A stretch of 64,000 bases of DNA from Hyalangium minutum (GTDB taxonomy: Bacteria > Myxococcota > Myxococcia > Myxococcales > Myxococcaceae), in the NCBI RefSeq assembly GCF_000737315.1, contig NZ_JMCB01000007.1, positions 124,001-188,000 of the forward strand, read 5' to 3'. The notes under the pieces are model-generated. The model was not told the origin of the DNA. It was given only the letters and a program-made list of their open reading frames with translations, and did no database searches. Position 1 is the first letter of the stretch; the number at the start of each line of letters is the position of its first letter. A program made the position numbers and the translations under genes. This document shows, piece by piece, positions 1-13,320 of this stretch.

Positions 1-740
1 GCCCGGCAGCTCGACAGCGGGAGGATGGCCACACCCAGCCCCATCTCCACCGCGCGCTTGATGGTCTCGACGTTGTCCATCTCCATCACCGGGTTGAGAT
101 CCAGGTTCTTCTCCCGGAACAGCCGGTCCAGCGCCTTCCGGGTGGGTGCCTCGCGGTCAAACGCGATGAAGGGTACTCCCGACAGCGCCGCGAGGCTCAC
201 CTTCGACTTGCTGGCGAACGCGAAGCCGGGCGCGCACACCACCCCGAGCTTGTCGTCGCGGAATGGGAGGATGTCCACGCCTGCGCGCGGCTGCGGGTAG
301 GCGACGATGCCAATCTCCGCCGCCCCGAGGATGACGTCGTCGTACACCTGATCATTGCGCCGGTAGTTCAGGCGCATGTTCACCTTGGGGTGCGTCTTCA
401 GCAGCTGCTTCTGCACGGTCTGCAGCTCATGCAGGCCCACCGAGTAGATGGTGGACACCGTGCTGGTGCCCTGCACCTCGGTGGACTGCTCGCGGATCTC
501 CGCCTCCACCTCGGCGAAGCGGGCGAGGATCTCCTTGCACCCCCGGAACAGCCGCTCGCCCGCGGGCGTCGGCGTCACCTGGCGGGCGCTGCGCGACAGC
601 AGCTTCTGCTCGTACCGGTTCTCCAGCGCGCGGATCTGCTGGCTCACCGCTGACTGCGTCACGTGGTTGAGCTGGGCGGCGCGAGAGAAGGAACCCGTCT
701 CCACCACATCACAGAACATCTTCAGGGATTCGAGCTGCAT
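1..740 (-). CDS. LysR-family transcriptional regulator (3' end runs off the window; absent from ORF track)
   Basis: Manual translation from ATG at 740: MQLESLKMFCDVVETGSFSRAAQLNHVTQSAVSQQIRALE..., a classic LysR N-terminal HTH. Confidence 0.93.
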   Translation of the reverse strand, partial: MQLESLKMFCDVVETGSFSRAAQLNHVTQSAVSQQIRALENRYEQKLLSRSARQVTPTPAGERLFRGCKEILARFAEVEAEIREQSTEVQGTSTVSTIYSVGLHELQTVQKQLLKTHPKVNMRLNYRRNDQVYDDVILGAAEIGIVAYPQPRAGVDILPFRDDKLGVVCAPGFAFASKSKVSLAALSGVPFIAFDREAPTRKALDRLFREKNLDLNPVMEMDNVETIKRAVEMGLGVAILPLSSCR

Positions 741-10938: not shown

Positions 10939-11051
10939 CCCATACGGGGGACGGGGAAGTCCACGGTCAGTGAAATTTTCCTTGTAGTTCCACTTGTGCC
11001 TGAATTAACAGGATTCCTGCTTCGGCGGAATTGAACAGGACAGGTGGAACG

Positions 11052-12893
11052 ATGACGAGACAGCAAGTGATGCGGGGAGCGGTCGCAGCAGTGCTGGCGG
11101 CTGCGGGGCTGAACTGTGGCGGTGAGGCCGGCTGGGAGCCGCCGAAGCTGGGGGTGCAGGAGCAGTCTTCGGAGACGGTGATGGTGCCCACCGGCATCAC
11201 CACGGCGGCTCGCCTGGGACAGGGCCGGGATTGGGTGAAGGAGGAGCTGCGCAGCGAGTGCGTGCGCTCGGCCACCTCGGTGACGATTCCGTTGCAGCAG
11301 GCCAACCTGCGCTTCAGCAGCTCCATGCTGAGGGAAGAGGCCAGCGAGTCGCTGGGCTTCAGCCTGGAGGCCAAGGCCCGCTTCGGACTGGTGGATGCCA
11401 GCGCCAAGGCCCGCTTCAGCCGCTCGCTGACGAGCAGCTCGCTCTCGGTGGGCATGTTCTACATGGCGGACTACCGCCTGGGCATCCAGAAGCTGGACGA
11501 GGGCAGCCTGCAGTGGCTCGTGCAGCCGGGCAGCGCGGATTGGCTCTCGCGGTGTGGGGATGAGTTCATGCTGCAGAAGGAGGTGGGCGGCCAGCTCTAC
11601 CTGCTGTACCGCCTGGACTTCAGCTCGCTGTCGGCGCGGCAGGAGTTCGAGGCCTCGGTCGGGGTGAGCTGGCCGGCCGGGAGCGTGAACTCCCAGGTGT
11701 CCTCGCAGGCCAGCCGCTTCGCGGGGCGCGCCTCGGTGCACGTGGAGGCCTTCCAGTACGGCGGAGACGTGACGCGCCTGTCGAGCATCCTCGGGGGGGC
11801 GGCCGAGGCGGGCCGGGTGGTGCTGGACTGCAGCATGACGAACCTGGCGCCCTGCGGCGCCTTCATGCAGAACGCCATCACCTACGCCTCGGCCCAGGGA
11901 GCGGGCACCTTCTCGGATTCGCTCAACAGCCAGCCGGCGGATCGCGTCTACCTGTTCAAGGACTGGGGCATGCTCGGAGTTCCTGCTCCGGTGCGCACGG
12001 TGGGCGCCAGCGTCCAGCAGGCGCGCACGAGCCTGCGCCAGCTGTTCGATCAGCAGGTGGAGTTCCAGGAGCGCGTGGCCACGCTCAAGAGCGGCCGGCT
12101 GTACGTGTCGCCGGATCTGCGCTCTCGCCTGGACGCGCATGAGCTGGGCGTGCAGCGCAACCTCTCGCTGATCAGCGACGCGGTGAAGCGCTGCTATGAT
12201 CAGCTCACCGATCCGCAGAACCCCACCCTGGTGAATGACTGCGTAACGGGGAGTCAGCTCAGCACGCTCGTGTCCAAGGGATATGATCCCAACTTGACCA
12301 TCGCCGCGCTCAACGTCGACGTGCGGCTGCCCTTCGTGTTCGGCGGCATGTACCAGGTGGATGATTCGCGCTCTTCGCCGAATGACGTGGTGAACCCCTT
12401 CACGGGCACGGTGGGCTGCCCCTCGGGCTTCACCGCCATGCAGTTCGGCCGCATCTACACCCCCGAGCACCGCACGGGCGCCAACCAGTTCCTGTGCGTG
12501 GCGCCGCAGGGCACCGTTCAGGGATGGAGCTTTACGGGCCTCTTCCAGGTGGATGACCGGGGCTCTGCGGGCAACAACGTGTCGAACACCTTCGCGGGCG
12601 GGTTGCTGAATTGCCCTATGGGCACGGGCATCGCGTACCGCTTCGGCCGAGCCACCGGCCCTGAGAGCCTGTGGGGCGTGAACCAGAACCTGTGCAGCCT
12701 GGGGACGCGGACCTCGGAGAAGATGCCCCTGGGCGGCCTGTACCAGGTGGATGACTGCGGCCGGAACAACGTGGCCAACCCGCTCACGGGCACGCTGAGC
12801 TGCCCGGACGGCTTCGCCACGCTCCAGGTCGGCAGAGTGAAGACGCCCGAGAGCCGCTGCGGCGCCAACCAGTACCTCTGCAAGGCCTACTGA
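11052..12893 (+). CDS. Putative MACPF/CDC-like pore-forming lipoprotein with three C-terminal Perforin-2 P2-like repeats
   Basis: Lipobox GLNC; LGQGRD; degenerate MACPF signature CGDEF-x6-GG; second FQYGG; helical linker; 3x (F/L)(G/T)G(M/L)(Y/F)QVDD..N..(T/A)G...CP.G..C. Confidence 0.65.
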   Translation: MTRQQVMRGAVAAVLAAAGLNCGGEAGWEPPKLGVQEQSSETVMVPTGITTAARLGQGRDWVKEELRSECVRSATSVTIPLQQANLRFSSSMLREEASESLGFSLEAKARFGLVDASAKARFSRSLTSSSLSVGMFYMADYRLGIQKLDEGSLQWLVQPGSADWLSRCGDEFMLQKEVGGQLYLLYRLDFSSLSARQEFEASVGVSWPAGSVNSQVSSQASRFAGRASVHVEAFQYGGDVTRLSSILGGAAEAGRVVLDCSMTNLAPCGAFMQNAITYASAQGAGTFSDSLNSQPADRVYLFKDWGMLGVPAPVRTVGASVQQARTSLRQLFDQQVEFQERVATLKSGRLYVSPDLRSRLDAHELGVQRNLSLISDAVKRCYDQLTDPQNPTLVNDCVTGSQLSTLVSKGYDPNLTIAALNVDVRLPFVFGGMYQVDDSRSSPNDVVNPFTGTVGCPSGFTAMQFGRIYTPEHRTGANQFLCVAPQGTVQGWSFTGLFQVDDRGSAGNNVSNTFAGGLLNCPMGTGIAYRFGRATGPESLWGVNQNLCSLGTRTSEKMPLGGLYQVDDCGRNNVANPLTGTLSCPDGFATLQVGRVKTPESRCGANQYLCKAY

Positions 12894-12975: not shown

Positions 12976-13320
12976 CTAACGAGGAGATGCGTATCGCCTG
13001 CGGGGACCCAATCGCTTGGGCCTGTTGGCTGCGTTGAGTACCTCAACACCATGCCCGCTGGGTGGCCCCTGCGCCGGGGCCAGCCTCGCACCTGCAGTAG
13101 CCAGGCCCAGGTGCTTCAGGATCGCGCGCACCCCTCGTGCTCCCTTCACGTACGCCAACACCCGGCGCCTGCCTCCACACCTCACGCAGGCGAGCACGTC
13201 GAAGTCGCACGTCCTCCTCAGCACCTCGGCCCAGTCCACTCGCGGCGTCCTCTGCTTCATCCGCTCCGTTCTGGCCGCTGCCTCCTTCCCCGCTCTCGAC
13301 TCCTCCTCACCTGCTTGGGG
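12976..13320 (-). mobile_element. IS91-like (rolling-circle) transposase C-terminal remnant, truncated
   Basis: PQAGEEES..RTPRVDWAEVLRRTCDFDVLACVRCGGRRRVLAYV..ILKHLGL..ARLAPAQGPP zinc-ribbon tail; no HUH catalytic region. Confidence 0.75.

Follow-up and report, generated by a model that had tools for sequence, protein, structure and literature searches.

A bacterial protein joining a divergent MACPF/CDC-fold domain to a perforin-2 P2-like domain in Hyalangium minutum

Perforin-2 (MPEG1) is the oldest animal perforin. Its P2 domain has been termed "unique to MPEG1" (PMC10781884), and reviews state that sequence analysis failed to connect P2 to other domains (PMC7593815). A gene of the myxobacterium Hyalangium minutum (positions 11052-12893, + strand) raises the question of whether bacteria encode relatives of this domain and, if so, in which combination. 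The gene lies in a window of 64,000 nucleotides (nt), which is the whole stretch of DNA analyzed here (contig NZ_JMCB01000007.1, positions 124,001 to 188,000). From the letters of this DNA, an original prediction had proposed a lipoprotein with a MACPF/CDC-like domain and three MPEG1 P2-like repeats. Our analysis indicates that the 613-residue product is probably an exported, disulfide-rich myxobacterial protein, possibly lipid-anchored, in which a divergent member of the MACPF/CDC pore-forming superfamily (N-terminal ~380 residues) is combined with a P2-like domain.

The gene itself is real. The protein has 21 homologues with 44-69% identity, and their start site falls at the same place as the ATG at 11052, which has a Shine-Dalgarno-like GGTGGA 5-11 nt 5' of it. 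An AT-richer spacer of 114 nt separates the gene from the upstream aminotransferase gene. Together with the conserved residues described below, the homologues and their start site bear out the gene as originally predicted, and all the motifs and repeats then listed were found where they had been placed.

The C-terminal P2-like domain

The C-terminal part of the protein contains three repeats with a common layout, in which FGG/FTG/LGG-hYQ is followed by NP.TG..CP.G[F] and then by a second cysteine (Table 1). Pairwise alignments of the repeats gave z = 17-35 against 500 shuffles, none of which (0/500) reached the observed score, and the six cysteines of the repeats were invariant. In a first, full-length AlphaFold2 model, each repeat consisted of three strands with a predicted local distance difference test (pLDDT) score of about 90. 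When a profile of the domain was searched against PDB, perforin-2 chains were the only matches, the best being the isolated mouse P2 domain (6sb1_A, E = 3.6e-8). In this alignment, the motif FGG...NP.TG..CP.G[FY] and both cysteines were aligned in two of the repeats, the third being aligned only weakly, and repeat 3 was profile-aligned to repeat 2 of MPEG1, NPMTNAQSCPAGY. These results support the three MPEG1 P2-like repeats of the original prediction, the last of which starts with LGGLYQVDD at about nt 12729. The P2 domain of perforin-2 is known to have pseudo-threefold symmetry, each repeat contributing three strands and one disulfide that is conserved (Ni et al., PMC6989145), and has been classed as a MABP β-prism (Pang et al., PMC6753088). 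By sequence comparison, the C-terminal ~190 residues are established as a disulfide-braced three-repeat β domain homologous to perforin-2 P2 (MABP-type).

The likeness to perforin-2 (6SB1, 6SB3, 6U23) includes the order of the domains, in which a three-repeat P2 domain with one disulfide in each repeat comes after an N-terminal domain of the MACPF/CDC fold. The two proteins differ in other respects, however. Repeat 1 of perforin-2 P2 has a long basic hairpin that binds acidic lipids (Ni et al., PMC6989145), and this 45-Å hairpin is absent here, as shown by the spacing of 25 residues between Cys456 and Cys482, without an insertion. The CTT/L-domain, the type I transmembrane (TM) helix and the cytosolic tail are absent as well, the protein ending 3 residues past the last cysteine of repeat 3. 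The linker between the two domains is helical, whereas that of perforin-2 is EGF-like, and the N-terminal domain (N-domain) is unrecognizable as MACPF by sequence. Finally, the protein described here is bacterial, with a signal peptide, a possible lipid anchor and short candidate transmembrane hairpin (TMH) segments of 42 and 36 residues. The proposed Perforin-2-like architecture therefore stands with regard to domain order and P2 homology, but not with regard to the hairpin, the CTT and the TM helix.

P2-type repeats were also found in two other settings. In the protein P0022 (L004 8001-10319) and its relative P0169, six P2-type repeats come after a canonical Pfam MACPF domain; a homologue search with P0022 retrieved only itself and one relative. 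The contig is metagenomic, with a guanine-plus-cytosine (GC) content of 46%, and its other genes look eukaryote-like (a Na/Ca exchanger with EF-hands and a weak Mis12 match). Judged by their predicted domains, these two proteins are examples of a perforin-2-like architecture beyond the animal MPEG1 structures in PDB. In addition, P2-like prisms occur as stand-alone proteins (P0189, P0213, P0198, P0199, P0175 and P0181), which are small, bacterial and secreted or lipobox-bearing, several of them from Archangium. They mainly consist of three FGGMY...NP.TG..SCP.G[YF] repeats, some with an extra N-terminal domain or Cys-rich tails, and on the basis of these repeats form an unannotated family.

The N-terminal domain and its place in the MACPF/CDC superfamily

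Pfam and NCBIfam scans of the 613-residue protein and of the N-domains of 25 diverse relatives gave no match at E≤1, with noise only, and a PDB sequence search with a shallow N-domain profile gave no match. The profile of the full-length 148-sequence alignment was dominated in PDB by leucine-rich repeat (LRR) matches from the C-termini of other members. The full-length AlphaFold2 model, built from 19 sequences, had a pLDDT of 66 overall and a poor N-domain, and no significant match was obtained with it in Foldseek. A model of residues 44-425 was built from 148 family sequences, and this had a mean pLDDT of 93.1 and a predicted TM-score (pTM) of 0.89.

DSSP analysis of this second model gave the order β1, helical cluster, β2, β3, helical cluster, β4 and GG, which in the model is the MACPF/CDC arrangement of a bent four-stranded antiparallel sheet with two helical clusters. 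A Foldseek search against PDB yielded 48 matches at E≤1e-3, and all among the matches listed were MACPF/CDC proteins (probability 0.85-1.00). These included TgPLP1 (E = 2e-6), stonustoxin, C9, Mpf2Ba1, pneumolysin, Plu-MACPF (E = 2.3e-5), GNIP1Aa, BT_3439, listeriolysin, perfringolysin, perforin, MPEG-1, C6, C8 and the CDCL 6NAL. The MACPF/CDC-like N-domain that had been proposed from the sequence is thus corroborated by the predicted bent sheet with its two TMH clusters and by the identity of the listed structural matches. The single long amphipathic helix proposed to follow it was modeled as two long helices, 319-346 and 354-381, in a linker region whose cysteines C381 and C397 are invariant or nearly so. 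An aerolysin-like or gasdermin-like N-domain, an idea prompted by the amphipathic hairpin patterns, was considered separately and rejected, as there were no such proteins among the Foldseek matches listed.

The two helical clusters contain the TMH candidates. A period-2 hydrophobic pattern at residues 101-123 and 199-223 was conserved in the 148 sequences and was the strongest outside the core strands, with the family patterns LGFS[AVL]GA[KR]AR[YF]G[LV]V..ASA.A.F for TMH1 and FEA.[FV].[VIL]SGP...V.A.L......F for TMH2. Such an alternating pattern is what would be expected of regions that refold into membrane hairpins. The short lengths of the segments are closer to those of CDC than to those of MACPF proteins. 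The FQYGG motif (aa 234-238) contains the Q235-x-G237-G238 that follows β4 and is invariant in the 148 sequences. A glycine pair after β4 is also conserved in CDCs and CDCLs, where its role has been described (PMC7527733).

Across 65 diverse relatives, C70, C168, G179, Q235, G237, G238, R325 and C381 were invariant. Near the N-terminus, the motif LGQGRD (aa 55-60) corresponds to the family consensus LGxGY, and YLGAGYD is found in P0022 and TgPLP1. An LGxG[YW]D-type motif is common to the N-domain family and these canonical MACPF proteins, which, as the motif is short, is by itself weak evidence of a relationship. With a deeper N-domain profile, one marginal sequence match was obtained in PDB, namely Aeg-L (9UJ0, E = 0.0017), a fungal MACPF protein of the Aeg-L/pleurotolysin B type. 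The match covers TMH1 to β4, including xGDxF-x6-GG, and pairs CGDEF-x6-GG with YGDRF-x6-GG. Unlike the present protein, Aeg-L is fungal, and it works together with a small aegerolysin as the large subunit of a two-component pore former of Alternaria.

Comparison with other pore formers places the domain further. The structural overlap was highest for stonustoxin (4WVM), with TMq 0.41-0.44 across about 380 columns, a longer alignment than for the other MACPF/CDC matches, but at a sequence identity of 8-9%. It is a fish venom heterodimer, and its other domains are unrelated. The CDCLs and BSAPs of Bacteroidota resemble the present family in being large, divergent bacterial MACPF/CDC families with variable receptor-binding C-termini, which are used in bacterial antagonism, and the CDCLs share the glycine pair after β4. 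However, CDCLs and BSAPs belong to other taxa, the structural matches came without CDCL-type sequence similarity, and there is no two-gene arrangement here. The motif that defines CDCs and CDCLs is F/Y-F/Y-Xn-YGR (PMC7527733); in the present protein F136-Y137 lie on β2, but CGD replaces YGR at the start of β3. The protein also lacks domain 4 of the CDCs, with its undecapeptide and cholesterol-recognition motif, having a P2-like C-terminus and no thiol-cytolysin Pfam match. We conclude that the N-domain constitutes a separate family of the MACPF/CDC superfamily, somewhat nearer to the MACPF side.

The general architecture of a bacterial MACPF fold with a C-terminal β-prism (MABP) is not new, as it is already known from Plu-MACPF of Photorhabdus (plu1415; 2QP2) (PMC2881412). 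That protein was described as MAC/perforin (MACPF)-like (PMC2881412), whereas the N-domain here is without a Pfam match. Furthermore, the PDB searches detected no sequence similarity between Plu-MACPF and the present protein, whose MPEG1-type repeat motif was matched in MPEG1 chains only. The novelty lies in the occurrence of the MPEG1-type repeat in bacteria and in an N-domain family that is invisible to Pfam and NCBIfam.

Export, family and probable role

The protein starts with a signal peptide ending at Cys22, with a positive n-region and a hydrophobic h-region. The box at this cysteine reads G-L-N-C, and the Asn at position -1 means that it is not a canonical lipobox ([LVI][ASTVI][GAS]C). 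At the aligned site, the five closest relatives have LNC, VHC, IHC, LHC or MHC; the cysteine is conserved, and canonical lipoboxes (LTGC, LAGC and LSAC) are present in more distant relatives. In the wider family, lipobox-type and ordinary signal peptidase I (SPI)-type signals both occur in a mixed fashion. Export of the protein is well supported by these sequence features and lipidation of Cys22 is plausible; the alignment of this cysteine with the canonical boxes of distant homologues speaks for the lipoprotein of the original prediction, and its own GLNC speaks against it. A lipid-anchored form might travel by outer-membrane vesicles, as originally suggested. Residues 23-45 may tether the folded domain to the possible anchor, as suggested by the model. 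Among the 14 cysteines of the mature protein, those that are invariant or nearly invariant comprise six in the N-domain and six in the repeats. This fits an oxidised, extracytoplasmic protein.

A profile of residues 1-422 was searched against 1.84 billion representative proteins. The N-domain family was found to comprise 1373 clusters (50% identity) at E≤1e-3 and 693 at E≤1e-10, with identity within the family falling to 21-30%. Many of 65 diverse members had other C-terminal modules, namely LRR (23), LGFP (12), VOMI (7) and Kelch (7), and also ricin-type lectin, ChW, FG-GAP and ApeC. A constant pore-forming head with an exchangeable binding tail is the typical build of targeted toxins. In three proteins with the same N-domain (P0017, P0018 and P0019, about 55-60% identity), a different C-terminal region of ~300 residues takes the place of the P2-like repeats, indicating that tails are swapped even within the close family; P0017, the one of the three that was scanned, had no Pfam match. 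When 185,579 species genomes were scanned, close relatives turned up in three Archangium genomes and one "Deltaproteobacteria" metagenome-assembled genome. The named members of the family belong to Archangium violaceum, Pseudobdellovibrionaceae (one copy alternatively labelled Zetaproteobacteria), Oligoflexales and Oligoflexia, and those outside Archangium (P0046, P0245 and P0061) are all Bdellovibrionota. This small named sample consists entirely of Myxococcota and Bdellovibrionota, lineages known for predation, and with very few names hints at a link of the family to predatory lifestyles.

If the protein is a pore former, the P2-like domain would most likely bind lipid or glycan on the target surface, and monomers would assemble into a ring-shaped prepore. 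The helical clusters at residues 90-131 and 191-226 would then unfurl to amphipathic β-hairpins, which would join into a large β-barrel pore. For such a protein, we would favor a role in attacking prey or competitors or in warding off grazers.

A number of observations weigh against this interpretation. The N-domain is not matched by the Pfam MACPF model PF01823, and in place of the MACPF signature [YW]-G-[TS]-H-[FY]-x6-G-G it has C-G-D-E-F-x6-G-G, with the family consensus CGDExVxQxxxG[GA]. Accordingly, the signature claimed in the original prediction stands with regard to the spacing and to the glycine, aromatic and GG positions, whereas Y/W, T/S and H are substituted and both the strict signature and the Pfam model fail. 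In hhalign, the N-domain showed nothing in common with a two-sequence MACPF alignment (P0022 and P0169), both profiles being thin, and the TM-scores of its model to solved structures are low, at 0.2-0.44. As to the C-terminal domain, MPEG1 P2 was absent from the top 50 Foldseek matches of the full-length model, although the C-domain of that model was confident, and the lipid-binding hairpin is missing. The lipobox GLNC is non-canonical, and the taxonomic picture rests on about eight named sequences. Finally, not every protein of the MACPF fold has been shown to lyse membranes, and the putative pore-forming activity of this family is deduced from the modeled fold.

A rival possibility is a non-lytic surface or matrix protein that uses the MACPF/CDC fold as a scaffold and the β-prism as a lectin in adhesion, development or matrix binding. 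Many C-terminal modules of the family are generic binding domains, P2-like prisms also exist as small secreted stand-alone proteins, no immunity or partner gene is adjacent, and a pore-forming function of family members is derived from a model. Against this, the period-2 pattern and the invariant GG hinge are kept at 21-30% identity, which would not be expected of a scaffold, and we regard a non-lytic function as unlikely. Alternatively, the protein could belong to a multi-part toxin of the kind seen in CDCL pairs, the complement MAC or aegerolysin/pleurotolysin, and would then be inactive without a partner encoded elsewhere in the genome. It would agree with this that Aeg-L, the only sequence-level match of the N-domain in PDB, is the large subunit of a two-component toxin, and that stand-alone P2-like proteins are present in the same genus. 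However, homologues sit in different genomic contexts, with no conserved neighbor in the five that were compared, and the protein already carries its own putative targeting domain, making a multi-part toxin quite improbable. Pore formation by the protein itself is the reading that we prefer.

Common descent of the entire MACPF-plus-P2 architecture and that of animal perforin-2, through a prokaryotic ancestor or transfer from a eukaryote, is very unlikely, as the common domain order, the sequence-level homology of the P2 repeats and the canonical MACPF domain plus P2 repeats of P0022 and P0169 are set against a nearest structural neighbor that is not MPEG-1, many unrelated C-terminal modules and the missing hairpin, CTT and TM helix. 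Most likely, the perforin-2-like domain order arose by independent fusion in a family whose targeting modules are exchanged. This is favored by the rank of MPEG-1 among the Foldseek matches of the N-domain (26th or lower, with E about 2e-4 versus 2e-6 for TgPLP1) and by the lack of profile similarity between the N-domain and the MACPF domain of P0022. It is also favored by the many unrelated tails in the N-domain family, by the occurrence of P2-like prisms on their own and by a linker that is helical and not EGF-like. The suggested prokaryotic relative of the Perforin-2 combination is supported in that both domains are related to those of perforin-2, with shared descent of the combination being less likely than independent fusion.

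MACPF/CDC proteins are central to immunity and bacterial attack, and the branch that would be added here amounts to at least 1373 clusters that are now annotated as "hypothetical". If its members form pores, they would be candidates for prey breaching or grazer resistance by myxobacteria and Bdellovibrio-like organisms, and their modular C-termini would be a natural library of targeting domains. More speculatively, and with considerable doubt, the family could be an unrecognised major MACPF/CDC branch that is concentrated in predators (Myxococcota and Bdellovibrionota) as a prey-perforating weapon with interchangeable tails, accompanied by a bacterial pool of P2 domains possibly ancestral to animal P2. 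As bacterial P2 homologues are detectable by sequence, the origin of the membrane-targeting module of perforin-2 can be tested by phylogeny and structure.

Genomic neighborhood and other features

The upstream neighbors of the gene encode an aminotransferase, a thioredoxin-like protein and a short-chain dehydrogenase, and the downstream neighbor encodes a molybdopterin oxidoreductase on the opposite strand. No partner or immunity gene was evident among the neighbors in the window, in line with the original prediction as regards immunity, and this holds for the inspected homologue loci too. A conserved operon, partner or immunity gene was considered as a candidate and rejected, because the neighbors differ at every locus examined. 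A paralogue of the 613-residue protein within the window was likewise rejected, as none was found there. On the contigs with the homologue P0003 (L001 6187-7830; L002; L003), genes for an RHS-repeat protein and a small PG_binding_1 protein precede the homologue on the same strand, and a DUF2378 gene is nearby; this RHS/PG_binding_1/DUF2378 arrangement was not seen in the window.

Table 1. Features of the gene, its product and the adjoining DNA (positions in the window; residues of the 613-residue protein unless stated otherwise)
Feature	Residues	Position (nt)	Strand	Basis or remarks
Pore-former/P2-like gene (candidate)		11052-12893	+	Open reading frame (ORF) of 613 codons; ORF variant with earlier start at 11031
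Signal peptide, ending at Cys22, MTRQQVMRGAVAAVLAAAGLNC	1-22	11052..11117	+	Read from sequence
Low-complexity tether (possible)	23-45	11118..11186	+	pLDDT <35 in full-length model; poorly conserved in alignment
MACPF/CDC-fold core	46-305	11187..11966	+	AlphaFold2 model and Foldseek; no Pfam/NCBIfam match
β1	76-89		+	DSSP of AlphaFold2 model
TMH1 candidate, LGFSLEAKARFGLVDASAKARF	90-131	11319..11444	+	Three short helices (94-125) in model; alternating hydrophobic/polar
β2	132-148		+	AlphaFold2 model
MACPF-signature-like motif CGDEF-x6-GG, CGDEFMLQKEVGG	C168-G180	11553..11591	+	Start of β3; C168 and G179 family-invariant
β3	171-190		+	AlphaFold2 model
TMH2 candidate, FEASVGVSW-PAG-SVNSQVSSQASRF	191-226	11622..11729	+	Two helices (193-219) in model; alternating pattern
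β4 (227-236), then invariant Q235-x-G237-G238	227-238	11730..11765	+	Model and 148 sequences
Helical linker region, joining core to C-terminal domain	319-420	12006..12311	+	Helices H319-346 and H354-381 in model
P2-like repeat 1, FGGMYQVDD...NPFTGTVGCPSGF...FLC	428-492	12333..12527	+	Cys456/Cys482 pair; FGGMYQVDD from nt 12339
P2-like repeat 2, FTGLFQVDD...NCPMG...NLC	493-558	12528..12725	+	Cys521/Cys548 pair; FTGLFQVDD from nt 12531; most divergent
P2-like repeat 3, LGGLYQVDD...NPLTGTLSCPDGF...YLC	559-613	12726..12893	+	Cys584/Cys610 plus extra Cys569/Cys603; stop codon next
Antisense ORF	745 aa	10854-13091	-	Arg/Ala/Pro-rich; spans whole gene; local DNA 69% GC
IS91-family transposase remnant	94-aa ORF	12976-13260	-	83 nt 3' of the gene's stop codon

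The long antisense ORF resembles the shadow ORFs that high-GC DNA typically contains; its relatives were not searched for. The short ORF beyond the stop codon of the gene had no Pfam match, and its first 74 residues resemble the C-terminal end of transposases of the IS91 family (35% identity, E = 4e-9, 2791 plasmid records).

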